DNA from: Octopus sinensis
Lineage: Eukaryota
Reading direction: 5' to 3'
Assembly (NCBI RefSeq): GCF_006345805.1
Contig: NW_021829832.1
Span: 186,001 to 250,000, forward strand
DNA length: 64,000 bases
Positions 11,987-63,900 of the stretch are shown here, in pieces (within the stretch, counting starts at the first letter, position 1; the number at the start of each line of letters is the position of its first letter). The position numbers were made by a program, and so were the translations under genes. The notes below the pieces were generated by a model. The model was not told the origin of the DNA and did not search any database. It worked only from the letters and a program-made list of their open reading frames with translations.

Positions 11987-13513
<1,527 letters not shown>

Positions 13514-27064: not shown

Positions 27065-28581
27065 CAGTACCGCTCAAATGTTTCGGACCACCCTATTTTT
27101 CTCAATTTCCAAGTCAATCCTAAATTATTTTTATACGGTTCTTTAGAGAAACTTATTAGATAAGCTTAAACACATTTATTCTATTTTAAAAACTTGGACA
27201 GATATTCATGTTTGGCGCAATTTTAAAATTATCGATTTTATACTCGATCATATGTTCCGGACCAGTTTAAAAAAAACCGAAAATTTATTAAACTTATAAA
27301 AAGTTAATAATTAATATTTCCTCCGTTGTTCGTTATAACAGCATTTATTCGCTCTGGAAGTGAATTGTATAATTTTTCAATGTACGAATTATCAATCTCG
27401 TACCAATTTTTTTGGTCAAATTCCAGAGCTCTGGAAGATCTTTTGGTTCCAGATCATAAAGTTTTTGTTTTAGTACCGACCACATATTTTCAATAATATT
27501 CAGTTCGGGTGACTGGCTCGGCCAAGTTTCTAAGATTTTTATTTGTTTCCTTTGAAAAAAATTCATTGTCGACATGGACCGATGGGAAGGAGCGCCGTCT
27601 TGCTGGAGACATGGTCTCATCATAAAAATTTTCGAGTCCAACATTTATAATTCTCTGATACTCTGCGGAATCAACATTTTTAATGCATAAGACAATGTTT
27701 CTCCATCCATTTGCAGCAATAGCTCCCCAGACCATAATGCTAGGAGAAAATTTTCGTGTTTTTAAACAATATTTTGAGTCAAATCTAGAGTTTGGTGGCC
27801 TTCTAACATAATTTTTTGTGTTTGAATGCAAATTTATTTTGCATTCATCACTAAAAATAATTTTACCCCAATCATTTTGGCTCCAAGTTAATTTCTCAAT
27901 GCACCAATTTTTTCTAGCCTTTTTATGGCATATGGAAAGACTTGGTTTTGGGCATTGCTTTCGCCCATTCAAATTATTTCTTTGTAGGCATCTTTTAATT
28001 GTATTTGTGCTTACAATAGAATTTAATTTCATATCAAATTTAATTTGATTTGCCGTTTTTGTGGGGTCTGCTTTCGAAATTCTCACTAATTTGCGTTCAG
28101 ATCTTGGGGATAACAATCTCGGTCGACCAGATTTGGGTCTGTCGGAATATAGTCCAACGGATGAATATCTGGAAATTGTTCTTTGAACAGCAGTTTTGGA
28201 TATTTTTAATTTTTCGGCAATTTCTCTTTGTGAAGCTCCATCTTTAAAAAAAGTGATGATAGCGACCCGATCAACCAGTGAAACACGCGGCATTTGTTAT
28301 TTATTAGTCTTTTGTTTTTAATTGAATCAAAAATTATTTAAATTTAAAGAGATTTAACTGGTTCGAAACATATGATTGCAACTGGTCCGGAACATATGAT
28401 CGAGTCAAAAATCAATTATATTCAATTGGCGCCAACAAAAATATTTAAAGAAAATTTTAGAATAGAATAAATGTATTTAAGCTTATCTAATAAGTTTCTC
28501 TAAAGAACCGTATAAAAATAATTTAGGATTGACTTGGAAATTGAGAAAAATAGGGTGGTCCGAAACATTTGAGCGGTACTG
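27065..28581 (-). mobile_element. Tc1-like DD35E element, copy 1 (frameshifted)
   Basis: TIR CAGTACCGCTCAAATGTTTCGGACCA at both ends with TA flanks (27063-27064, 28582-28583). Near-identical to 49471-50991 but with a 2-bp deletion near 27610 and a 1-bp deletion near 27410 in the ORF. Confidence 0.95.
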
Positions 28582-34885: not shown

Positions 34886-37587
34886 CAGGGGTCGGCAAAA
34901 GCGGGCTCGCGAGCCTTTGGAGGCTCTTTAACTCTTAAGTAGGCTCTTTCAATTTTTAACTATTTTTTTTGTTTTGTTAATAATAAAAAATCTTTGCACG
35001 TTTAACATTAATTTTTTGTTGTACATTTTCAATCAAAATGGACTGAAACTTTTGCATTCACGTCTAATTCAGAACAACTACCGAAATGTCTCATTTGCCA
35101 GGAAACTTTGAATCAAAATAAAAAGTCAAATTTAGAGAGACACTTTAACACAAAACACTCAAATTTCGCAAAAATATCCAATTGGTGATTCGCGAAAGAA
35201 AGCTATAGAAGAACTTGCAAAGAATAATCAGATTGAAAATTCCGCTTTTAAATATTGGTATCACAATGTCAGGACTGCAAATATTGGCAGTTTTTTGAAA
35301 AGCCACGAGATCGCAAAAAGGGGAAGACCATTTCCGATGGCGAATTTATAAAGGCATGTTTCATTAAAACTTCTGAAGAACTTTTTCACGATTTTTCAAA
35401 TAAGGCAGAAATCGTGAATAAGATAATGAATATATTTTTATCTGCGAAAATAGTAGCCGACAGGACTTTTAAGATGTCTTCGAATGTATCTGTTCAACAA
35501 GTTTCTGACATGAAATTGTCTAATTCAATTTCATTAGCAATAGATGAATCATATACAGTGGGGCAAATAAGTCATGGCACACCTATCATTTTTTTTAATT
35601 CAATATATTTTTACAATGATAACTTTTTCGATTTAGTTCATCATGCTACACAATAAAATCTTGCATTCTTTTGAACCCATTTCGTGCTAATTATATTCAT
35701 GAATTTCAAATAAATATAATTGTTTTTGCTTCATATTTAGAAAAACGTCAAATTTGATGTGTAAAAAAGTGATGACACTATCAAAAAATATGGATTTTTT
35801 TGACAATAAGATACAAATGATTATCTTTTGGTGCTTTGTTTTTTCTTTGAAATAATTGATTCTTAGTTCTATTAATATAATTGATTAGTAGATTCCGATT
35901 AGTATAAATATACTTTTATTTTTCGCCTTTTATTAAAATTATCTCGTCGATGAGGAAAGAGCATTCTTTGGACCTAAAACAACGAGTTGTAACTGCCCAC
36001 CAAAACGGTGAAAGTTATGGAGAGATTTCTAAATTGTTGATATTACCAAAAAGTACTGTTCGAAATATTATTACTCGATGGAAGCAACGCGGAACTGTTA
36101 TTAATAAACCAAGATCGGGTGCTCCAAAAAAGATATCTCTGCGTTCTTCTTCATTAATGAAAAGATTAGTTACTTCAAACCCAAAAATAACTCGAAAAGA
36201 ATTGGCCGATAATTTAAAAATCACAGGAACGTCAGTGTCCTTTCGTGCAATCACTTCTACATTACGCAAAGAAAATATCAATAAGCGAAGGCCCCGTCGA
36301 GTTCCGTTATTAAAGAAAATACACCTTTCAGCGCGAATCCAATATGCAAAAAATCTTTTGAACAAAGAAAATGAATTCATAAACAATATTTTGTGGTCGG
36401 ACGAATCAAAAATACAACTTTTCGGACTGAACTACACGCTTTCAATTTGGCGCAAATCAAACCAGGCGTATATCCCAAAATGCACCATACCTATCGTAAA
36501 GCACGGGGGAGGTAGTATCATGTTGTGGGGTTGTTTTTCATCAACAGGTGTTGGTGAACTATTTGTAATTGATGGAATGATGAATTCTCTTAAATATTGC
36601 GAAATTTTGGAAAAATGTCTTTTACCTTCGGTCGCGAACTTAAATTTGACACAACATTGGACATTCCAGCATGACAACGATCCTAAGCACAAGTCAAAAG
36701 TAACCGTTAAATGGTTAGAAAAAAACAAAATAAATGTTTTGGAATGGCCAAGTCAATCGCCAGACCTGAATCCCATCGAAAACTTATGGAAAATATTAAA
36801 AATAAAAGTTGGCTTAAGAAAACCAAAAAATATCCAGGAATTAAAAACAATTTGCTACGAAAAATGGACAAATATTTCTAAAGTAGAATGTCAAAAACTA
36901 ATTTTTTCTTACAAAAAACGATTGGAAGCAGTTCTGCTAGCAAAAGGGAATGCAACTAAATATTAATTGGATTTCGTGCCATTACTTTTTTCCCTCAAAA
37001 AATTGACTTTTAAAAATAAATCGTTAATTAGTGATTCCCTTTAGGATAGTTTTTTTAATAATTTATCTAAAAAGTACTATATTACTAATTTATTTTTTAA
37101 AGTAATGTATTTTATATTTTTTTTGCAAAGAATTGTTAAATTTAGTCAAAATTTGCAAAGGTGCCATGACTTTTTTGCCCCACTGTAAATGACATTGCAC
37201 AAGTATCATTGTTCATGTCATACTTAGGTGTCTCTGTTTGTTCGTTATGTGTTTCGAGGTTTCCTGAGGCAAGAACTTTTGGCATTATTGCCTCTAAAGG
37301 GTCAAACCCGTGATGAAGATCTTGTTGGTGCAGTCGTAGAATATTTTGAAACGAATTATATTCCTCTTAATAAAATCGTTTCAATTTCAACTGACGGTGC
37401 TGCAAGCATGCTGGGATCGAGAAAGGGATTTATAACTTTAATTAAAAGGAGAATTGATCATGAAGTGATTACTCTACATTGTATTATCCACCAAGAAGCA
37501 CTATCTGCGCAAACGTTTCCGAAAGAAATTTTAGAAGTGATGGTCATAAAGATAACTAACTTCATTATATCAAGAGTAATATATTAG
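34886..37587 (+). mobile_element. 5' part of a hAT (GTF2IRD2/SPIN-like) element, interrupted by Tc1 35556-37185 and ending at the RTE 3' tail
   Basis: Left TIR CAGGGGTCGGCAAA at 34886. Transposase KCLICQETL, DGEFIKACF, SLAIDES | NDIAQ..VRYV, SISTDGAASM, LHCIIHQEAL reads across the Tc1 insertion. Confidence 0.85.
35556..37185 (+). mobile_element. Tc1 element, DD34E, intact 338-aa transposase ORF 35950-36966
   Basis: TIR CAGTGGGGCAAA(T/A)AAGTCATGGCAC, TA flanks; WSDESK, QHDNDPKH and SPDLNPIENLW with 34 residues between the second D and E. Confidence 0.95.
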
Positions 37588-42729: not shown

Positions 42730-44974
42730 TTTTAATATAATTCTACTAACAAATACAGTCTGTACCAAAACATTATAATACTCGTAAATTTAGTTAAAAT
42801 ATAACTCTATTTTCACAAATATCCATTTTTATGACTTAATTTTTTACATCCAAATTCAAATTTACTTTCTTTAACTATTTAAAAATTATTTGATTTTACG
42901 AGATCACTGGTTGGGGTGATACAAATTGTCATGTACCATAACATTATAATAATTTTTATATTTTTCATACAAAAACAAATTTATTTTAAATTTAACACGT
43001 TATTATTTAATTGACATGGGACGAAAAAGCGACTTGTCATTTGATACCAAAAAAATTATTTTAAATCTCCATACCTTTGGACTTAGTCAAAACAAAATCG
43101 CGGAAATCACAAATTGCTCACAAGGATCAGTTTCCAACGTGTTGCGAAAGCAGAATAACGAGAAAAACAATCGTGTCGGAAAGGGAAGGCCGAAATTAAC
43201 GTCTTCACGAGAAGAAAGAGTTATTCAAAGAGTTTTGATGGAAAATAGATTCATCTCTATTAAGGAAATTTCCGAAAAACTTATTAATTTGAGCCGAATG
43301 ACAATAAGCAGACGTCTAAACCAATTGGGATTTTTTTCCAGAACCCCTGTTTGCAAGCCCTTCCTAACATTAAAACAACAGAAGCAAAGATTAGCTTGGG
43401 CTAAAGGGAAAATAAACTGGACTATAGAACAGTGGTCCAAAGTTATTTTTTCTGACGAATCTAAGTTTCTGCTGTCAATTGGAGAAAAAGGTACGTATGT
43501 TTGGCGTAAAAGAAATGAAACAATTCATCCTTCATGCATAAATCAAAAGCTTCATTACAGAAAAGGAGCTATGGTTGTGGGAGCGATGAGTTTTAATGGT
43601 TGAGCCCGCTTTCAATTATTGATTCAACTGTAAATGGATTAGTATACAGAGAAATATTAGAAAAAATTTAATTTCAACTGGGCAAAAGTTATATGATGGA
43701 TGTAATTACATTTTTCAACAGGACAATGCTCGTTCACACACTGCAAAAGATACGATTGAGTGGATTCAAAACCAAAAAATTAATCTTATGAAATGGCCTC
43801 CTAATTCGCCTGATTTCAATCCAATCGAAAATCTTTGGGGAATAATGAAACGAAAAGTTATGGCTCGTGGAATAAAAACGATAGAGGATCTGAAAAATGA
43901 ACTGAAAATCATATGGAATGAAATTAAAATTGAAGAAATAAAAGTTTTAATTGAATCAATGCCAAAAAGAGTAGATGCTGTACTAAAATCTCGAGGGAAT
44001 AACATCAAATACTAGAAAATATTATAATCTTTTGTTACATGACAAAAATTATTATTATACTAGCTCGGCAGCTCGCTTCGCTCACCGCGACCTAGCTCCT
44101 GCGGAGGGCCTGTTTCATCAAACAACTATAAGTTTATGTAGATGTATAAAACTACCTGGTTTAATGTAACCCTATTCTATCGCCTGTTGATAAACGATGT
44201 TTGTCGTCCGTCCTTCCTTGGCATATATGAATAAATTTTCTCTTCTGCCTACCCTCGAGCATCCCACATACAGCTGTCCATGTGAAAAGCACTCACTCTC
44301 TAAAAATAACCCAACTACCTTTAATGACTGTCCCTGGGCCTTGTTTATTGTCATTGCAAAACTCATCCTCAAAGGAAATTGCAGCCTTTTAAATCTAAAT
44401 GGTAATTCATCAGAAATTATCGGAATTCGTGGAATATAAACATCCTCACCTCTATACTTACCTGTTAATATCGTCGCCTCTATTACGTTAGCCATCAAAT
44501 TTTTGATAACTAACCTCGTTCCGTTGCATAATTTAGGTGGCGCAAGATTTCGTAATAAAACCACTGGAACGCCTATCTTTATCTTTAAAAGATGATTCGG
44601 CATTCAGAGGGATCTAAGGAGTTTAAAAATTCGATCCGGTTGAATTTTTAGAAAATAACAAAAAAAATTAAAAAAACAAATAAAAATAAATAATTTAAAA
44701 ACAAAAAAATAAAAAAAAAACTTTAAAAATTTGTAAAATAGTATAAACAAAAAAAATCTCTGCCGCCACGGCAACAACCTGTCTAATTTTTTTAACAGCC
44801 AATTAAGATAATGTTTAAGAGCCTTTATAGTCCGGAGATTTAGCTTAGTGACCTTGATTAGACAAACCACTGGCGGAAATGGGGCAGGCAGAGTAGCAGC
44901 AGCCAAAAAAGCGACACACAAAAAAGATTTAATTAATTACCTTAAGCTGACCGTTTTTTCTTCAGCTTCGTTTT

Positions 44975-47745: not shown

Positions 47746-49096
47746 CAGTGGGCCCAAAAAGTCATTGCACCACTTAATAAATTTTAGTATTTTACGTTTT
47801 TACCCATAAAATATGAAGTATTTTGACTTTTAATTATTTTTTATTGATATTACGAAAACAGCCGTTTTTAGCACTACTTTATGGAAAATCGGAAGGAATA
47901 TTCTTTTGAGCTAAAAAAGATGATCGTCAAGTCCCACCAAGAAAAAAAAAGTTACAACCAAATTTCCAGACAATTCAATATTCCGAAAAGTTCAGTAAGG
48001 AATATAATAGTCCGTTGGAAAGAACGAGGAAATGTTTGCAATAAATCGAGGTCTGGTGCACCTAAAAAGATATCGAGCCGTTCTCTTTCAATGATAAAAA
48101 GGAGTGTGGCAAATGATCCCAGAATTATTAGAAGCAAGCTGGTAGATGATTTAGAGACCGTGGGAATCAAAGTTGGTTGATCTACGATAACTAATACATT
48201 GCGCAAACAAGGAATTCATAAAAGGAGGGCACGACATATTCCTCTACTAAGAAAAGTCCATATATCAGCGCGACTAAAATTCGCTCAGAATTTTTTAAAT
48301 AAAGATTCAAAGTCATTGTCGAATGAAACCAAAATTGAACTTTTTGGCCTCAGGAAAAAAAATCAAGAATATGACAAAAAATGAACCATACCGACAGTTA
48401 AGTACGGAGGAGGCAGCCTAGTGTTATGGGCGTGTTTTTCGTCTCAAGGAGTGGGTGAACTATTTTTCATAGATGGAATATTGAATGCCAAGATGTACGT
48501 CGAAATTTTGGAAAATTGTTTAGTTCCGTTCATCAATAAATTAAAGCTAAGAAGCAATTGGACGTTTCAACACGACAACGATCCCAAACATAAAGCTAAA
48601 ATAACTACTGAATGGCTTAATAATAATGGAATAAATGTTCTGAAATGGCCTAGTCAATCTCCTGACTTAAACCCAATTGAAAATTTATGGAAAACATTGA
48701 AAATAAAGGTAGGAAACCGAAGACCTAGAAATATAGTGGAGTTTAAAGCATTCTGCCGTGAGGAGTGGAATAAAATTTCCAAAGAAGAATGCTTTAAATT
48801 AATAGATACATACAAAAGAAGATTAGAAGCAGTAATTGTTGCAAAAGGGAATGCAACAAAATATTAATAAGGCATCGTGCCAACACTTATTGACCCTTAA
48901 ATAACGCTAAAAATTAAAAAAATGTTTTTCTTTGTCAATTATCGCTAATTTTAAAGATTTAAAAATATTTTCTAAATCAGAATCTTTTGAATTTTTCAAA
49001 AAAAATAATTAAAAGTCAAAATACTTCATATTTTATGGGTAAAAACGTAAAATACTAAAATTTATTAAGTGGTGCAATGACTTTTTGGGCCCACTG
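47746..49096 (+). mobile_element. Tc1 element B (DD34E, internally deleted), related to 35556-37185
   Basis: About 95-bp TIR beginning CAGTGGGCCCAAAAAGTCATTGCACCAC; TA flanks; ORF pieces 47881-48867 with QHDNDPKH and SPDLNPIENLW. Confidence 0.92.
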
Positions 49097-49229: not shown

Positions 49230-51060
49230 TCTCACAAAATTGCAACGTGGAATGTAAGAGGACTTAGTACCGGGAAATTGGACATTGTAAAATCTGAAAT
49301 GCGTCGTTTAAATTTTGACTTACTTGGCATAAGTGAAGTCCACTGGAAGAACAATGGTTGTTTCCAGTCTGATGATTTCGTGATCTATTATTCTGGCAAT
49401 GAACATCTGAAAAGAAATGGTGTTGCTTTCATTACTTTGAAAAAATTTTCCCATTTCATTGAAAGTCATACAGTACCGCTCAAATGTTTCGGACCACCCT
49501 ATTTTTCTCAATTTCCAAGTCAATCCTAAATTATTTTTATACGGTTCTTTAGAGAAACTTATTAGATAAGCTTAAATACATTTATTCTATTCTAAAATTT
49601 TCTTTAAATATTTTTGTTTGGCGCCAATTGAATATAATTGATTTTTGACTCGATCATATGTTCCGGACCAGTTGCAATCATATGTTTCGAACCAGTTAAA
49701 TCTCTTTAAATTTAAATAATTTTTGATTCAATTAAAAACAAAAGACTAATAAATAACAAATGCCGCGTGTTTCACTGGTTGATCGGGTCGCTATCATCAC
49801 TTTTTTTAAAGATGGAGCTTCACAAAGAGAAATTGCCGAAAAATTAAAAATATCCAAAACTGCTGTTCAAAGAACAATTTCCAGATATTCATCCGTTGGA
49901 CTATATTCCGACAGACCCAAATCTGGTCGACCGAGATTGTTATCCCCAAGATCTGAACGCAAATTAGTGAGAATTTCGAAAGCAGACCCCACAAAAACGG
50001 CAAATCAAATTAAATTTGATATGAAATTAAATTCTATTGTAAGCACAAATACAATTAAAAGATGCCTACAAAGAAATAATTTGAATGGGCGAAAGCAATG
50101 CCCAAAACCAAGTCTTTCCATATGCCATAAAAAGGCTAGAAAAAATTGGTGCATTGAGAAATTAACTTGGAGCCAAAATGATTGGGGTAAAATTATTTTT
50201 AGTGATGAATGCAAAATAAATTTGCATTCAAACACAAAAAATTATGTTAGAAGGCCACCAAACTCTAGATTTGACTCAAAATATTGTTTAAAAACACGAA
50301 AATTTTCTCCTAGCATTATGGTCTGGGGAGCTATTGCTGCAAATGGATGGAGAAACATTGTCTTATGCATTAAAAATGTTGATTCCGCAGAGTATCAGAG
50401 AATTATAAATGTTGGACTCGAAAATTTTTATGATGAGACCATGTATCTCCAGCAAGACGGCGCTCCTTCCCATCGGTCCATGTCGACAATGAATTTTTTT
50501 CAAAGGAAACAAATAAAAATCTTAGAAACTTGGCCGAGCCAGTCACCCGAACTGAATATTATTGAAAATATGTGGTCGGTACTAAAACAAAAACTTTATG
50601 ATCTGGAACCAAAAGATCTTCCAGAGCTCTGGAATTTGACCAAAAAAATTTGGTACGAGATTGATAATTCGTACATTGAAAAATTATACAATTCACTTCC
50701 AGAGCGAATAAATGCTGTTATAACGAACAACGGAGGAAATATTAATTATTAACTTTTTATAAGTTTAATAAATTTTCGGTTTTTTTTAAACTGGTCCGGA
50801 ACATATGATCGAGTATAAAATCGATAATTTTAAAATTGCGCCAAACATGAATATCTGTCCAAGTTTTTAAAATAGAATAAATGTGTTTAAGCTTATCTAA
50901 TAAGTTTCTCTAAAGAACCGTATAAAAATAATTTAGGATTGACTTGGAAATTGAGAAAAATAGGGTGGTCCGAAACATTTGAGCGGTACTGTACAATTAT
51001 CCGCGATCGTATTATTCTTATCCACGTGCGTGGAAAACCACTGCATCTTACATTTATGCA
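49230..51060 (+). mobile_element. RTE endonuclease N-terminal fragment interrupted by the DD35E Tc1
   Basis: IATWNVRGL..LLGISEVHW..YYSGNEHLKRNGVAF..IESH | TIIRDRIILIHVRGKPLHLTFM reads in frame once the Tc1 and one TA are removed. Confidence 0.85.
49471..50991 (+). mobile_element. Tc1-like DD35E element, copy 2, intact 330-aa ORF 49760-50752
   Basis: Same TIRs as copy 1, TA flanks (49469-49470, 50992-50993); FSDECK, QQDGAPSH and SPELNIIENMW. Confidence 0.96.
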
Positions 51061-54491: not shown

Positions 54492-55940
54492 TTGCCCGCC
54501 TGGTCTCTTTGGCCTACGGTCGCCCCAGTCTCCTTATCACTTGTCCTGCAACGGTGTCCAACAAGGCGACTCTGGGTCCTATTCTTTTTGTCCTGGCAAT
54601 TGATCCCGTTGCCAGAAGTGTATCCTCCCTTTTTAATGCATGGTATTTGGACGATGCCACTATCGGAGGTACTTTCGAATTCTTTTTTGACGATCTGAGA
54701 ATTTTAATCCCAGCATCACACGCAATTGGGCTCAAAATCAATTCCCCCAAAAATCTGAAATCTTTAACATCAGTTATGATGTTCGCCGTTTCTCTGTTTC
54801 CCGGTCCTGTTTTTATTGAGGAACTGTTTCGCCATTTCTAAATTATTGTTTACTTTTAGAAGCGCACCATGCTTTGCCAATCCAGAGAGCCTCTCCAGAT
54901 TCGACCATGTCCTCAGGACTTGCCTCGAATCAATATGTAATGCCCATTTTGACGATCTTCGCTGGGAACAGGGAATACTCCCCATCAGTCATGGCGGCAT
55001 CGATGTGCGCTCAGCCATTGACCTTTCTTTGTCAGCATTCCTTTCTTTTACACATGCAACGAGCACCCTTGTCCAAGAGATTCTCCAACTTGTTACCGAA
55101 TCTTCTATGGACTCAGAGTCAGTCAGCGCGGAAAGTCACTGGCTTGGGTTGCCTCTTCTGCAAAATACACACGCATAGGACAAATGGAACAGGATCCTTA
55201 GTGACCAGAAAATGAATAACCTCAAGCCTAAGCTTAATCAACATCGCTTGGCTTATTTATTGATTGCTTCGTAACCATATTCGGGAGCTTGGTTGACTGC
55301 CATCCCAATGGGATCAATTGGAACCTTATTGGACGATGATTGGCTGAGGATCGACGTCTCATTGCGCCTGGGGCTAAACGTATGCCGGGAACACCGGTGC
55401 CGCTGCGGATCAACCGTTGACCTCTTTGGATTGCACCGATTATCGTGTCAGAGAAGCTCCCGACGTCTCCCTCGATATACTGCCCTGAACGACATAGTCA
55501 AGCGGACTCTCGAAACTGCCGGATTCCCATCACTGTTGGAACCGGTCGCCCTGGTTCGGGAGGATGGTAAACGTCCTGATGGCCTAACAACTTTTCCTTT
55601 GGAAAATGTCAAGTCTCTCATCTGGGACGCAACTTGCAAGGACACCTTCTCCTCCGGAAACATCTTTACGTCGGCCGCAGAGCCGGGCTCCGCAGCTAAC
55701 CTGGCAGGAGCGCTAAAAGTCAAGAAATACAGTGCATTATCGCACCGTTATATCTTTGCCCCGATCGCATTGGAGACATCAGGAGTCTTTGGTCCCAGAA
55801 CTAAAAAATTCCTTATAAAAATGGTGGACTTGGCAAGCAGAAGGAGAAACGATCATCGAGAACGGACATGACTTTTCCAACGCGTAACAATAGCCATCTT
55901 GCGTGGGAATTGCCATTTCATCTTATCCTCTGCTGCTAAT
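54492..55940 (+). mobile_element. 5'-truncated CRE-clade non-LTR retrotransposon (RT end, zinc knuckle, RLE), frameshifted
   Basis: LGPILFVLAI..WYLDDATIGG, ILPISHGG, CRCG..HRLSC, LEPVALVREDGKRPDG..WDATCKDT and PIALETSGVFG. Confidence 0.85.
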
Positions 55941-56377: not shown

Positions 56378-57663
56378 CTATTTTTGGTTATTGTAATTAG
56401 GCGATGACTTTGATTTATAATTTATTAGAAGTTCTTGGTAGAAGGCACAGGTAGTTCGTGCATCAGTGCGAGATATAATATAGAAATACAATGCTGTCAT
56501 AACCAGCAAGGGAAATAAGAAAGTTATCATAGGAACGGAGTAATGATTTTCAGGAAATACAAACTGCAAAACGACAAAAAGTCCCATTAATGCGACAATT
56601 ACAGACACGTCTCGGAAATATAACTTTGGTTTCATATTTTCCTGAAATAACTGTTCGGCGTCTTCAATAGGGCCTTTATTGCAGCCAATATTTGTGTTTA
56701 CATTTTCTAATTTCTCGTTAAAATCAATCAAAAATGTCGCATAATACCCCACGTGATCAGAATACCAATATTTAGTGGTTCCAATTTCCTTAAAAGTAGT
56801 CCCAAATCGCGTAACCGAACACTCTAACTTTACAAAAAATGAAATTACTGTAATTGGAATGGTAAAGCAAATAGTCTATGCGTGATCCGGGATTATTTCC
56901 CGAGTAAGGGTTACCCGGAAATCCAAATGTGACCAACTAACAACATTTTATAGTCAAATCCACCTTTGGATCAGAACAAGAATCGTGCAAATCGGTGAGA
57001 ACATTTAACAATAAGAAATCTTCATTTTGAGAGGAAGAATTGAGGTCCCCCGCAAGAATGGCGACATCGGACGACTGGTGGCACTGATTTATAAAACAGG
57101 CCAGCTGATAGAACTGTGTCCTCCTGTCCACAGCAAAGGAATTTGTGTCCGAATAACTGGCAATAGTCTTGAAGTGTCATAAAACACAAAAACGTGGCAA
57201 TTGAAGATATCAACGGTTTTTCCATAAAAATTGATTCTGACAACTCCGACACCCTTCCCGCCGTACCAATCTCCGTGTGTGATTTGGTGAGGATGTCCAT
57301 TCATGGTAAATTTGTAAAAAGATATCCACAATATTTCATGTCGAGAAAACACGGCTAATCCTGACCCAGAAAAACCACTTAATGAATGACTAATTTTCCA
57401 TACCTCCGAAAGTAGTGAGAATAACAAAACCTAGCAGTGTTAGCAATAAGGTGGTAGTCATTAATATCCCACAGCTATTATTAATCAATAATTAGAATAC
57501 TTCTTGCAGGCAAACTACGTTATAAGGACAGTTTGCAAGTGTCTCCCCAATCGCCTCCATTCGTGTTTTTCTGTCCTTGGAGACGAAGGGTATCGGGATT
57601 CCCCTATTCGCTATAACGAATGGCTTTTAACCAAGTGTTGAGAGTGACCACATTTAAGTCCAT
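56378..57663 (-). CDS. SMPD2: Neutral sphingomyelinase (SMPD2/Isc1 family)
   Basis: Spliced MDLNVVTLNTWGIP..VVCLQE, HYFRSGFSGSGLAVFS, HGDWYGGKGVG, ILAGDLN, SDH and two C-terminal hydrophobic helices; TAG at 56378-56380. Confidence 0.92.
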
Positions 57664-57769
57664 TATGACCTATTAAATTAATATTTTATTTCCTAGCTAA
57701 ATTAACAATTAAAAAAATCATTTTTCAAAATTTCAGCCAGTTAAATTTCGTTATCCTTAGTCACTTGCT

Positions 57770-57830
57770 GTCTGTCGATTTGGTCACCTTCTCGCGGTGG
57801 CAGATGATAGTTTTATACTACGAAAAGACC
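57770..57830 (+). ncRNA. HDV-like self-cleaving ribozyme at the 5' end of the LINE
   Basis: P1 GUCUGUC(57770-76)/GGCAGAU(57799-805) with a G.U wobble at the cleavage site; P2 GGUC(57782-85)/GACC(57827-30); P3 ACC/GGU; L3 UUCUCGC; P1.1 UC/GA; P4 UAGU/ACUA; putative catalytic C57821 followed by GAA. Folded by hand. Confidence 0.75.
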
Positions 57831-60506
57831 CCCAACTACTCCCCTGTCGGATCGATTCCGCAACGTCGGTGGCAGCAGAGCAGTCGTGAAGCCGTTTCTC
57901 CCAAGGACCTCTTTGCTTATCAAACTCGCCCTTCTCCTTTCCGGAGACATTGAACCAAATCCTGGCTCCAGCAAGAAGAACCCATTACGTAGCTTGCAAA
58001 TCAACATGAATGGGATTGCTCATAAGACTGCTGAACTTTATTCTTTCTTGGAGAAGCACGGCGTGGATATTGCTTTGGTGCAAGAAACGAAGCTCTCGAC
58101 TAAAAATCGTTTGCTTGATTTCTCGGGTTACTCATACGTCCGTTGGAAGGTCTTTTACGACCTAAATTCTGATCACAACCCGATTATTTTTGAGAATGCC
58201 CTAAAATCCAACATCGACATTCAACGGCGTTGTTATACAAATTACAAAAAAGCTTCCTGGGACGACTACCGTCTCGCTCTAGAAAAATCATTGAATGATT
58301 TCGATATCATCAACTTTCGTTCGACTGACGCAGCAGTCAATTATGTACTTATCATCTCCATCTCTAAAACATTCATTCTCAAGGAATTATACAAAATTTC
58401 TCCCAAAGTTACAGCCACGAAGTAAACGCCCTTATAAAGACCCGTAACAAACTGAAACGGGAAAATCTGCTGTGTCCTTTATAAAACTGAGGAATCTAAA
58501 CAAACAAATCACTGCTGCCATAAATCGGCATATTGACTCGAAGTGGAGTCAATTTATTGGTTCTATTGATTATAGATCCAATTCCTCCAAAATTTGGTTA
58601 ACCCTTAAAGGGATGAATGAACTAATGTTCAAAAAGCAAAAATCGCATAAGTCTGTTGTTTCTCGTCCCCGTTCAGATATGTCACTCAATCCGGTTAAAC
58701 ACACTAATGAAATATTGCACTTCATTAAGTCACAAAAAATCTAACAAAAACGACCGGAAAGTAACCAAAGAAGACTTCCCGTCAAAGATTCTATACCGAC
58801 TTTCACTGCGGAGAAAGTCTCGCAATGCATTAAAAACTTCAAAAACTCCCCTGCAACTGGCCCTGACAACATTTCAATCTATCATCTCAAAAGACTATGC
58901 CCTAATGCTATAAAAGCAATAGTCTCTATTTTCAACAATTCTGTTGCGAAAAACGAAATACCATCCCTCTGGGAGAAATCATGTATCATTCCATTGGTCA
59001 AACTAAACAAACCGGCTGGCATTCCAAGTTCCTACCGCCCAATATCTCTTCTGTGTACGCTAGCTAAAATCCTTGAAAGACTAATACTCAACATGGTTTT
59101 AAACCACTGCACTCAACAACTACTCACTTAAACACTTTCGCAATCTGTCCTGGACGGCTTCAATGAGAAGAGACCCCCAAAACGAACAGTTTCGATCGAT
59201 GTCTCAAAGGCGTTTGACTCGGTGTGGACTCATCAACAAAATTTTAGACAGACCTAAACCCAAACCTCAAAACCTGGCTTGCAAACTTCTTATCGGGTCG
59301 AATGGGATACGTCTCCCTTATGGACCACTGTTAAAAACAACACTATCTTCCAAATGGGGTACCGCAGGGTTCTGTGTTGTCCCCTTCCCTGTTCAACTTA
59401 TATTTACATGACTTTCTTACGCAGGTGACATTATCATTGCTTCTAAACACGCAGGTTACATATCAGCCTCTCTCAACATCCAGCAAAAACTATACTCCAC
59501 TGAGAATTGGTTCATTGAAAACAGACTCGAGGCTTCGCCCTCGAAATCATCGGTCACCTTATTTTCTTTCGAGAGAAGACAATCAAACCTTTACCCGAAG
59601 TTATCTCTCTTTGGTTCTGACCTCCCACTATGCAAAAACCCTACTATCCTCGGACTTACTTTTGATCCAGCTATGTCCTTCAACAAGCATGTCTCTAACA
59701 TTTCTGACAAGGCAAACAGACGCAAAAACATACTAAAAGCAATAAGTGGTGACATTACAGGCCCCAAAAAGCCACTCCTCAAACAAGATTACAAACAATA
59801 CATACGCCCGTACTAAGTTATGCGAGTCCAAGCTGGGCGCCCTGCCTATCAATAAACTCGACAATGACACTTCAATCAGTACAAAACAACGCACAATATC
59901 TGGGTGTCTGAAATCAACCCCCATTGATAACCTCCACTGTGAAACAAACCTTTTGCCAATTGAAGATCATCTAAATATGAGAGGAGCGCAATTTTTATTT
60001 GCATCTCGAATTCCCTATCATCCATGTTCTGCTCTAGATTTGCTAATTCTCGTTCAGAGAAGAACACTATATTTCCGGATCATTGCTAAAATTGATGGCT
60101 TGCACCAATGTCCATATCCAATGAAGAGAATTCACGATTTGATATCTACGTCAGCTATTCTTAAGCTGACGCCTAACTCTGTACTCAATAAACCTCCTCC
60201 TGACGTTCTGAATTGGTTCTCGACCGTTCGGCTCAGACAAACTTGGCTCGTTTCCGTTATGGTCATCACTCCTCATTAAACCACTATGCACACAAAATGG
60301 ACATCTCGATCTCCCCCTTTTGTCCCATTTGCCGTGCTGACGAGCACACAACTGCCCGTCTATTCGTCTTGGTCTTTTTTGGCTCCGTAAAAAATTTGCC
60401 ATTCACTTCCCGGAGGTCTTATGGGAGCAACCTGGGAGGGCGCTGTTGTTTCTGCAAGCTGCTGGTCTCATAACTTAATGTGAGATCGGGGTTATGCAAC
60501 AACAAC
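57770..60506 (+). mobile_element. Ingi/Vingi-like APE non-LTR retrotransposon, 5' end preserved, coding region dead
   Basis: 2A-like DIEPNPGS, then EN (LQINMNGI, ALVQETK, SDHNPI; internally deleted), RT (SYRPISLL, IDVSKAFD, GVPQGSVLSP, YAGD in place of YADD), ISGCLKSTP..LHCETNLLP, C-terminal CPIC..H finger and a (CAA)n tail. Clade assignment is by resemblance. Confidence 0.85.
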
Positions 60507-60939
60507 TTCCGTTGCTCTAGCTGTTGTAATTTCCATTATATTTGACAAAGAGAACAGACAGGCGAAACTCATATAAAGTTGGAACACTCCTAGGAGATAA
60601 CATTACCAGGAGAAAGATGTCGTCGACTATTGCAGTCAAAAGACCACATGAGTACGAAACCGCAAAGTTGGAACACCCCTACGTGCCAAGTTAACAATAC
60701 TTTTGTTAAGCCTGACCGCAAGGCAGGGACAGAAGAGCATTTGAGTCTGAACTAAAGTCCCTCGACACGACTAGAATTTGGCATTTCACACAAATATAGA
60801 AGTCCAAAGGGAAAGTTGATTTAAGTAACGCAAAATAATACGCGTAATTACAGAAACTAAAAAACTCTGATTCCTTAACATTAATTCACATGGCAGTAGT
60901 GCTGTTGCATCGCAATTAAAAATATATTAAAAACAAAAA

Positions 60940-63900
60940 CTAAACAGGTCTTAGTCTAAACAATCGAAAATTAGTGGGGGCCAAGCCCATGGAGGTCTCA
61001 ATGCTGCCAATAACGCAGCGAAGATAATCCTCGACACAACTAAGCAAATTCGACCGACAATCATCCATGATTTCACTAACACTGGACAAATCACACAAAA
61101 TACAAACTCGACCGTCCCAACTTGAAACTGCAGGCTAAAAGAATCAAAAAACTCATCAGAATCCGGACAAAAATTCAGAACAAGCTTCACCACATTTGTG
61201 CGATCATAATCAACAAAAATAACAAAAACTCTAAACATGAGACCAGTAATACTACTCCATAGCATCCGCACAAATGACATTATAGTTAACACCAATATCG
61301 ATCAGATCGTACAGCAAATGCAGCGCGTAGTTTGCACGCACACAAACTTTGTAGAAAAACTAATAATTACGAGGACAAAACAACCTCATTCATTCGTGAC
61401 AGTTTTGCAGGCCACGAAATATGCCGACACGAATTAATCAGTAAATTTTGGACAAATATCTCATAATCACAGGGCTCATATTCTACGACGGAATAATCAC
61501 ACCATATACCAAACTGATACCCAAATTCGACCCCTCGGACCTCTGCATTCTTGAACTCCTTCATGTTCTCGTAACAAATCTCGACGGAGAGTGCAATTCG
61601 GACAGTCAGGCGTGTGTCGACTAACAATACTGTTAGACTATAGTCAGCCAAATCCACCACCACACAATTATTGACACTGAATATTACAAGCTCTATCACA
61701 CCTCAGAATTAGTTTAATCCGATCTTTCAGCTCATTTAAATGCCCAGAACACAAAACACGACTTTGTTCCTTCAAATCGGCCAATTCGACGCCGAGCATT
61801 TCGTTTTCGGCAATCAAAGTTTGTTCCGCGGAAAGACTCGAATTCACAAGCCTACAAAATCTAATAACAAAAAACTTATCAAGTTCTTCAACTTTTTTCC
61901 CCAATTCACAATTTTCTAGAATTTGTTTGAAAACACAAAACCCTTCTCCAACTCGGAATTTCTCTTCTCCCTTTCCTGCAACTGTTTTTGCTCTGATTTT
62001 TTTAAATTAACAAAAAGGAACCCTCGGCTTGTTTCTTCATAAAAGCCTTCTCACACTCATCTGCTTTCCTGACAAGGATTTCGAACTATTCCCTCAAAAC
62101 GATTCCACTAACCTGTTCCCGGTGTAATTTAGCCTGGTCCGCCATTTTCTTTTTATCTACCAGTCTTTGGAGACAGAATTGGCCTCCCCCGCTGTAAATC
62201 ATTCCAAACAACTTTTTCAGTTTTTTCTAAATATCCCAAGTTTTGACAACCATCGTGGCGGTTCCATAAACACGATACAGCGGCATCACCTCCAACTTCA
62301 ACACACGTGGAAACCCGTCGAATTCCCTAAAATAATAAAAACACGCCAAAACAAACAAATCCTCCTTGGTTGTCTTTGGCATTTTACCAAAGTGGAGAAA
62401 ATAGGCAAAACGATCCACAAATTGATTCTACTGGCTAAATCATGACACTCCACCGTAATTTGAACTCCGTGATGATTTCCCAACTGGTCATCAATCTCTC
62501 TTAGGTTGAACAAATCGACTAGTTTGTCCACGGAGACATACTCATCCTAACATGTTAGAACACCACCCACCTCTTCTAATAATTTTTTCCAAAATATACG
62601 ACTTTCTGTCATTGTTTCCACCGGCACTGGATCTGGACATGTTTTGTAAATTTTATCAAACAAGCCTATTTGTTGACGATGGAAAAATACTTTGAATTCG
62701 GATTTGTGTTTTTCTTTTATTTCTCTTAGCCAGTTCTTGCCTGGTTACTTCTTTGGTTAAGATATCTGTGGGTTAAGACTGGACATACCTTTTATATCCT
62801 CCTCAATTTCCTCTTCTATATTATCAATAAAGTCCAATAACCTTTCCGCATTGCGAGATCTACCAAAATACTCCCCGTTTTCCCAAAATTCCCAAAAGTT
62901 GTGGTATCTAGCACTTCTAAACACGGCAAAACCTCCAATCGTTCTATTTCGTCGAAAAATATCGCTGGTTTGATCAATGCTTGCTCGCGTGCTGAACACA
63001 CGCCTACTCAGTGTCCTCGAATTGTCACCATATGAACAATAATTGCCATATTTAGACACATTTTGAGTGTAATCTCCAATCTTTAGAACATCACATCAAA
63101 CCATAAATTCGAGTCAAATCCACGTGACCAAAACTCGAGGAATCTGACTAATTCAATAACACAACCACAAACCGACTCTTTTCGAGATTTCAACCTCTTC
63201 ACTCAATTGCCGGGACATGGAAACCACTGTTTGGTCTTAGAAATGAGAGAATCTACAAAACCACTATTCCGTCCTTCCTCATGGTCTCCTCTTGAGAAAT
63301 CGAATCTACAAATACCACAATTTGTCGTTTTAAACTGTTTAAATAACTTTGATGTGACTGAATGAGTTCTTTCAGTTATTAAAACGTTAATACCAGAATT
63401 CATAGAAGCGATTCTGTCCAATTCCTCAATCAAAACTACGACAAGTTTTGAATCAAAACAAACCACTGGAAGGTGAATCCTCGTCCATAGAAATGTCTGA
63501 AATAACTACATTCCGACACATACCCATATCCTCCTGGAAATCCGGCATCACTGGGCTCTTGGTCTGTCCAGTCCTCGCTGTGTCTGAATTTAATATACAA
63601 ATATAACCAGAGGATGTTGCAGTTCTCATTATCGCAGTATCTCCATAGTCTAAAGTTATAAAAATGTAAAAACTGATAGTTCCACCGTAAGATAGACCGG
63701 GATATGTTTTTTTACTGTTAGAATTCTCCTGTTGATTCGCTGTAGACTTGAGACCTTGGAATAAGAAGATGACATACCCCGTCCTTCCGTGGATGAACCA
63801 TATTCCCCCATTAGGATTGTATTGTTGGACAATTTGTTATTTGATGAAGTCTCGTCAGGGTCACTTCTGTTGTCCTTACTCGAGAGGATAGTGGATGGCA

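Follow-up and report, generated by a model that had tools for sequence, protein, structure and literature searches.

Does the 5' end of the degraded non-LTR retrotransposon found in the window (the whole 64-kb stretch of DNA analysed here) carry, or did it once carry, a self-cleaving ribozyme? The question is raised by the 61 nt at positions 57770-57830, which on paper form an HDV-like double pseudoknot on the plus strand. The window belongs to contig VCDQ01004456.1 of assembly GCA_006345805.1 (Octopus sinensis), where contig coordinates are obtained by adding 186,000, so that the motif falls at about 243,770-243,830. As judged from sequence, we propose that this segment is probably the 5'-terminal HDV-like self-cleaving ribozyme of a single-ORF LINE of the 2A-APE-RT-Zn-knuckle type. 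A processing ribozyme of the LINE 5' end is the best reading because relatives of the element carry full, covarying ribozymes at the equivalent place.

The first-pass annotation had recognised all elements of the HDV double pseudoknot within these 61 nt, and each pairing is found exactly where it had been placed (Table 1). P1 opens on a G57770.U57805 pair and includes one internal U.G; cleavage is predicted to occur immediately 5' of G57770. P1.1 consists of two pairs, C57791-G57806 and U57790-A57807, so the UC/GA combination that had been described as compensating is indeed present and, as discussed below, P1.1 is paired in all the sequences that we compared. The reservations that accompanied the initial description, namely a short P2 and two extra A residues in J4/2, are equally justified: P2 has 4 bp, J4/2 has 6 nt and both fall outside the published descriptor. 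No longer P2 partner preceded by CNRA exists within 500 nt downstream, where 57827-57830 remains the best partner with a maximum of 4 bp; the sole downstream candidate for a longer pairing, 57850-57855, was rejected since it has no CNRA before it. Overall, the predicted catalytic core (P1, P3, L3, P1.1 and CNRA) is intact, and P2, P4 and the length of J4/2 appear either degraded or naturally minimal. A 9-nt direct repeat, CGGTGGCAG, occurs at 57795-57803, where it corresponds to the P3 3' strand and the first part of the P1 3' strand, and recurs 72 nt downstream at 57867-57875; this second copy could be an alternative pairing partner for the P1 5' strand.

Table 1. Coordinates of the candidate ribozyme, of the LINE that carries it, of the neighbouring host gene and of the ribozymes found in related elements. 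Positions refer to the window or, for the relatives, to their own locus.
Feature	Position	Strand	Remarks
Complete motif	57770-57830	+	GUCUGUC GAUUU GGUC ACC UUCUCGC GGU GGCAGAU GA UAGUUUUAUACUA CGAAAA GACC
P1 5' strand GUCUGUC	57770-57776	+	pairs with GGCAGAU 57799-57805, 7 bp
J1/2 GAUUU	57777-57781	+	descriptor parse
P2 5' strand GGUC	57782-57785	+	4 bp with GACC
P3 ACC/GGU	57786-57788 with 57796-57798	+	3 Watson-Crick bp
L3 UUCUCGC	57789-57795	+	matches published TYYHCG*Y rule (PMC4870747 supplement)
P1 3' strand GGCAGAU and J1/4 GA	57799-57807	+	G57806 and A57807 are the P1.1 partners
P4 remnant UAG-UUUUAUA-CUA	57808-57820	+	3 bp, 7-nt loop, +1.4 kcal/mol
J4/2 CGAAAA	57821-57826	+	CNRA followed by two extra A; putative catalytic C57821
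P2 3' strand GACC	57827-57830	+	pair list
5' leader spacer	57831-57885	+	second copy of CGGUGGCAG at 57867-57875
2A-like leader ...LLIKLALLLSGDIEPNPG-S	57886-57969	+	obligatory Pro replaced by Ser
APE endonuclease remnant	57994-58425	+	internal deletion of ~150 aa near 58141
RT region	58757-59816	+	RVT_1, E=1.2e-25; broken by stops and frameshifts
C-terminal RxRxGH...CPxC...H Zn-knuckle and ORF stop (60473)	60213-60473	+	read from sequence
A-rich tract, possible element 3' end	60907-60947	+	sequence
SMPD2-like (neutral sphingomyelinase) host gene	56378-57663	-	PDB 8j2f, E=1.3e-23, aligned from residue 9
Ribozyme L005a	L005:5035-5104	+	relaxed scan
Ribozyme L005b	L005:4122-4192	-	covariance-model search
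Ribozyme L007	14-81		relaxed scan
Ribozyme L011	56-118		hand parse, then in-register model search
Ribozyme L019	90-169		hand parse, then in-register model search
Ribozyme L020	170-230		relaxed scan; L021 is the same locus

The motif has the same orientation as the degraded LINE; it precedes the single ORF by 56 nt and lies 115 nt upstream of the GDIEPNPG of the N-terminal 2A-like leader, which directly precedes the APE domain and is followed in order by the RT and the Zn-knuckle. No stop interrupts the frame between ribozyme and 2A motif (57831-57945), nor does this frame contain an ATG, a hint that translation is initiated unconventionally; an original ATG could have mutated to the GTG at 57886. 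The same ATG-less open frame is seen in one of the relatives (L007:82-188). In the 2A-like motif itself, LLLSGDIEPNPG-S at 57928-57969, NPG-P has become NPG-S and, because a Ser (codon TCC) stands for the obligatory Pro, the 2A is expected to be inactive in this copy. The APE deletion is apparent from the alignment with P0038, in which query residues 37-86 match residues 1-50 and query residues 86-150 match residues 204-270. A Pfam search of the Zn-knuckle region (60213-60473) returned no family. With about six stops, about six frameshifts, the APE deletion and the Pro-to-Ser change in the 2A, the copy is an old, dead insertion. Its decay was estimated from stop-codon density at roughly 5-8%, a level that makes an intact core with an eroded periphery plausible. 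The heptamer CTTAGTC occurs at 57756-57762, 7 nt before G57770, and again at 60950, just past the A-rich tract (p ~0.02); as a target-site duplication it is a weak candidate, and the only one that our search gave. Pattern searches and blastn found no second copy of the LINE within the window, a protein search returned no homologues of the N-terminal ORF and an exact look-up of the LINE ORFs matched no database record; the nearest database proteins are metagenomic ORFs with at most 57% identity. This LINE family is therefore represented here by a single copy, and the covariation described below is that between families.

How close does the motif lie to the 5' end of the element? Immediately upstream, the SMPD2-like host gene is arranged divergently to the LINE and its start, supported by a Pfam Exo_endo_phos match that begins at profile position 1, is located 107 nt from the motif. 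Since this gene starts at ~57663, the LINE can reach at most ~105 nt 5' of G57770. The GC content also changes across 57750-57770, from 0.20 on the upstream side to about 0.5. The motif thus coincides with the LINE 5' end or lies no more than about 100 nt from it, and the initial claim that it marks this end is borne out by its sense orientation, by its position just ahead of the ORF and by the host gene that bounds the element. The reading frame of the SMPD2-like gene shifts several times, and the gene therefore either has short introns or is a pseudogene.

The strongest argument comes from related elements, whose loci were collected by a metagenome scan with the N-terminal ORF and from contigs encoding RT homologues. 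The published descriptor found no match at these loci; it misses their ribozymes owing to a purine at the second L3 position and a G.U pair in P3. An alignment of the relatives' 5' leaders revealed a common P3-L3-like block and, for the relatives, L3 was left free at its second and final positions and one G.U was tolerated in P3. Complete HDV-like ribozymes were found at six loci of metagenomic 2A-bearing LINEs (Table 1). All have a P1 of 6 bp, opening with G.U in five of the six, a P2 of 5-8 bp, a P4 hairpin of 5-7 bp and a J4/2 of the form CAAAN (CAAUU in L011). The 2A-like motif of the LINE ORF follows 105-185 nt downstream of the ribozyme; in three cases the spacing is 105 (L011), 107 (L007) and 109 nt (L020), vs 115 nt in the window. 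Over the 94.8 kb of locus sequence, scanning with P2 of at least 5 bp yielded four sites, where shuffled sequence gives an expectation of 0.33; of these four, the L018 site, which is on the minus strand, looks spurious. A covariance model, R2, was built from L007, L011, L019 and L020, and it recovered both L005 ribozymes, which lie outside its build, with 47 bits (E=2e-8) and 27 bits (E=4e-4). At L001-L004, L006, L008-L010 and L018, neither descriptor nor model detected an HDV-like motif, and several of these contigs probably do not include the 5' end.

To count pairs, the six relatives and the window motif were brought into a core alignment of seven sequences, assembled by hand from the structural parse. 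Paired cells amount to 99% and both sides change at 12 of the 15 pairs; when the partners are slid by 1-3 columns, 37-44% of the cells are paired. The P1 counts are partly circular because the alignment came from our own structural parse, and P3, P2 and P1.1 stand in positionally fixed columns. P1.1, which joins L3 positions 2-3 to the two nucleotides after P1, is complementary in seven sequences out of seven and occurs in five states (AC/GU, AU/AU, GC/GC, GU/AC and UC/GA), the last being the window's alone; both of its pairs covary (GC/AU/UA and CG/UA). At the level of sequence comparison, this is good evidence that the HDV-like fold is real in this group of 2A-bearing LINEs and it shows that the predicted window motif follows the same P1.1 rule. 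The ribozymes of the relatives resemble the window motif in their position relative to the 2A, in helix order, in the R-U first pair of P3 and in the covarying 2-bp P1.1. They differ from it by an L3 of the form U-R-Y-H-C-G-W, with its purine at position 2, and by the CAAAN/CAAUU J4/2, and their P2 and P4 are strong whereas those of the window are far weaker.

Several further variants were seen among these loci. A 14-kb stretch of L005 contains three LINEs, two of which have complete 5' ribozymes, and the third (12434-12499, minus strand) shows a relic without P3 and L3. In L022 (274-352) and L023 (about 40-135), P1, P2, P4 and a CAAA J4/2 are kept and an 18-29-nt hairpin replaces the 7-nt L3, leaving no canonical HDV active site; in both, as in the window, the 2A directly precedes the APE. 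In L011, ACTGACCGTCTCCAA is present twice, at 9-23 and 47-61, the P1 5' strand and its preceding nucleotides being duplicated upstream of the ribozyme.

It could be argued that the LINE 5' leader simply happens to fit a loosened descriptor and has no ribozyme ancestry, an explanation that we consider unlikely. The descriptor that we used follows the HDV-like rules of the Luptak laboratory (PMC4870747 supplement): P1 R...Y of 6-7 bp, J1/2 of up to 50 nt, P2 of 6-7 bp, P3 of 3 Watson-Crick bp, L3 TYYHCG*Y, J1/4 RN and J4/2 CNRA*, with P4 demanded in the 'stem P4' version and optional in the 'loose P4' version. The segment 57770-57830 conforms to the core rules (P1, P3 plus L3, and a J1/4 able to form P1.1) and departs from those for P2 (4 bp vs at least 6), for J4/2 (6 nt vs at most 5) and for 'stem P4' (3 bp at +1.4 kcal/mol). 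In favour of chance, the unrelaxed descriptor (P2 of at least 6 bp, J4/2 of at most 5 nt) finds zero sites on both strands of the 64-kb window, and the looser L3/P3 rule needed for the relatives gives 0.6 chance sites per shuffled window. With the published L3 and P3 rules and a relaxation to P2 of at least 4 bp and J4/2 of at most 6 nt, which was set after the site had been seen, 57770-57830 is however the single match on both strands; the corresponding expectation is 0.04 sites per window (400 dinucleotide shuffles), and 40,000 shuffles of 57740-57940 produced 3 matches, i.e. 7.5e-5 per 200 nt for this position and strand. Because of these expectations, motif, strand and position together are unlikely to have arisen by chance. 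Chance would also have to account for the coincidence with the LINE 5' end, for a spacing to the 2A that matches relatives with unambiguous ribozymes, and for a P1.1 complementarity that is kept in a unique pair state. Covariance-model scores are at background level, which speaks for chance. Across the whole window, no Rfam HDV-type family (RF00094, RF00622, RF01787/8, RF02682 and others) matches at gathering; the best match, RF02682 (HDV-F-prausnitzii), reaches 13 bits vs a gathering threshold of 44, and is the only ribozyme match at permissive thresholds, aligned end to end with its first position exactly at 57770. This test has little power because the same models also miss the clear ribozymes of the relatives (no match even at E<=10 on L007, L011 and L005:4050-5150). 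Model R2, from which the window had been left out, scores 57770-57830 at 5.4 bits and aligns it in register, beginning at 57770. The E-value of 0.046 applies to the local 121 nt alone, and about ten unrelated sites of the window score above it (7.6-8.9 bits). The descriptor and covariance search recommended by the first-pass annotation has thus given a divided answer: the relaxed descriptor isolates the site, and the unrelaxed descriptor, Rfam at gathering and model R2 do not. A search of the 20-mer ribozyme core against GTDB genomes and IMG/VR gave five chance matches in bacterial coding sequences and no viral ones.

Thermodynamics provides no signal for the pseudoknot either, which again would suit a chance resemblance, and it suggests another rival, in which a plain hairpin serves, or served, in the 5' UTR to bind a protein or as part of a promoter, and the pseudoknot is incidental. 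Both the MFE and the centroid fold are this hairpin (57772-57810, -14.2 kcal/mol), which competes with P1 and P2 and is more stable than the nested P1 and P3 helices (-7.8 kcal/mol). A dual role is conceivable, given that in L1Tc the same 77 nt are promoter and ribozyme (PMC3383444). Still, the fold z-scores (-0.89 and +0.66) are unremarkable, the hairpin being no stabler than shuffled sequence (z=-0.89); it leaves the L3 consensus, the CNRA and the complementarity of P2 and P1.1 unexplained, and the relatives keep the pseudoknot helices instead. We regard the hairpin as a quite improbable explanation. A far closer contest concerns a special case of the ribozyme reading, namely that the ribozyme was once active and is catalytically dead in the window copy, for which we see about even chances. 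The state of the LINE, with its interrupted ORF, truncated APE and altered 2A, points in this direction, as do a P2, P4 and J4/2 that are poorer than in all six relatives and the finding that shortening P2 abolishes or lowers cleavage by an R2 ribozyme (PMC3774820). On the other side, every core position is intact, a 6-nt J4/2 is also present in L005b, whose ORF is largely intact, and P4 is dispensable in many R2 ribozymes (PMC3774820). The present activity of the window copy is therefore doubtful: self-cleavage at G57770 today is what we infer rather than observe, because the copy is dead, its P2, P4 and J4/2 are poorer and the covariance models do not single the site out.

The ribozyme reading suggests the following scheme for an active ancestor. 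The element would have been transcribed within a longer read-through or host transcript, and its first 61 nt would adopt the nested double-pseudoknot fold. The J4/2 residue C57821, acting as general acid/base, would cleave the bond 5' of G57770 and leave the element RNA with a precisely defined 5' end. If R2 and L1Tc are a guide, the folded ribozyme may in addition assist the translation of this uncapped RNA, and the 2A motif would release a short leader peptide. Such a scheme has precedents: where elements are transcribed by read-through, HDV-like ribozymes at LINE 5' ends set the 5' end of the element RNA, and they may also promote its translation (PMC6765202, PMC5786205, PMC3185411). In L1Tc, an element of the ingi clade in Trypanosoma cruzi, the HDV-like ribozyme L1TcRz/Pr77 constitutes the first nucleotides of the element RNA, and a single ORF encodes a 2A-like peptide first, then APE and RT (PMC3185411, PMC3383444, PMC3708506). 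The window element has the same arrangement of 5' ribozyme, 2A, APE and RT, and in both cases release from read-through transcripts is proposed; P1.1 has 2 bp in the window vs 1-2 bp in L1Tc. We see, however, no sequence similarity between them, and the host here is a cephalopod-like metazoan. The 5' ribozymes of R2, R4 and Dong have this fold too and likewise define where the element RNA begins. R2 ribozymes have a P2 of at least 5 bp, a P1 of 6-7 bp and a P4 that is variable or absent (PMC3774820); those of R2/R4/Dong differ from the window motif by this longer P2 and by a J1/2 that is often very long, and R2-type elements differ from the window LINE by their restriction-like endonuclease and rDNA target specificity. 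Among metazoans, LINE-associated HDV-like ribozymes include drz-Spur and those of RTE and Baggins (Webb 2009 and Ruminski 2011, as cited in PMC4870747 and PMC6765202). The sea-urchin ribozymes, with a P3 of ACC/GGU or GCG/CGC, an L3 of UUCACGU and a CGAA J4/2 (PMC4870747 supplement), have a core very similar to that of the window, which in L3 and J4/2 is closer to them than to its metagenomic relatives; they differ by a P2 of 7-8 bp and a P4 of 5 bp. The likeness between the window element and L1Tc is a resemblance of design and not proof of Ingi or Vingi membership.

RNase H downstream of the RT is a feature of Ingi; Pfam gave no RNase H match in the post-RT ORFs of the window, where the region is degraded. 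A 2A directly before the APE does not discriminate Ingi/Vingi because this order is also found in CR1-clade elements (PMC3708506). Four of the relatives' elements (L005a, L005b, L019 and L020) have a Cys/His-rich PHD-like stretch after the 2A, and L020 ends in a (CAAT)n tail. 2A-PHD-APE arrangements are tied to CR1/Crack-type elements (PMC3708506), and the predicted PHD and the tail of the relatives would fit a CR1/L2/Crack-type origin at least as well as an Ingi/Vingi one.

It is tempting to speculate further that ribozyme, open leader of ~110 nt and 2A form one conserved 5' expression cassette in a large, mostly marine metazoan LINE group that includes a cephalopod, a proposal that we hold tentatively and think less likely than not to be correct in full. 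In such a cassette, self-cleavage would produce an uncapped RNA, translation would start without an AUG (the window and L007 have no in-frame AUG) and the 2A would shed the leader peptide. As part of the same tentative proposal, the ribozymes of this group would be invisible to the published descriptor and to Rfam. They would have a G.U in P3 and, in covariation with J1/4, a purine as the second L3 nucleotide, and the group would also include odd variants with a hairpin for L3 (L022 and L023).

Because related LINEs hold clearer ribozymes, the window motif is best seen as a worn new example of a known arrangement, and the consequence for the locus alone is small, the copy being a dead insertion beside an SMPD2-like gene. 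If our interpretation is correct, cephalopod LINEs would join the retrotransposons whose RNA 5' end is set by an HDV-like ribozyme, and such a ribozyme would be tied to an N-terminal 2A peptide outside trypanosomes. It would also follow that an entire group of LINE ribozymes escapes the Rfam models and the published descriptor, and the motif would offer a precise annotation marker for the 5' ends of full-length LINEs.

Other elements populate the window. Tc1/mariner transposase ORFs are located at 49760-50752, 35950-36966, 48421-48867 and 43016-43603 on the plus strand and at 27490-28293 on the minus strand; two Tc1/mariner ORFs are intact (330 and 338 aa), and the copy at 27490-28293 has its N-terminal part in common with the 330-aa protein. 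Retroelement-like ORFs at 54816-55871 (+) show a CxxC...H...C pattern followed by RPD...D.T.K, reminiscent of the restriction-like endonuclease domains of LINEs; Pfam gave no match for these ORFs. Finally, a single-exon ORF at 13091-13513 (+) encodes a katanin p60-like C-terminal region (P0121) with 80% identity to the annotated Octopus sinensis katanin p60 A1-like protein (P0122), and at this level of identity P0121 is probably a paralogue or a retrocopy.
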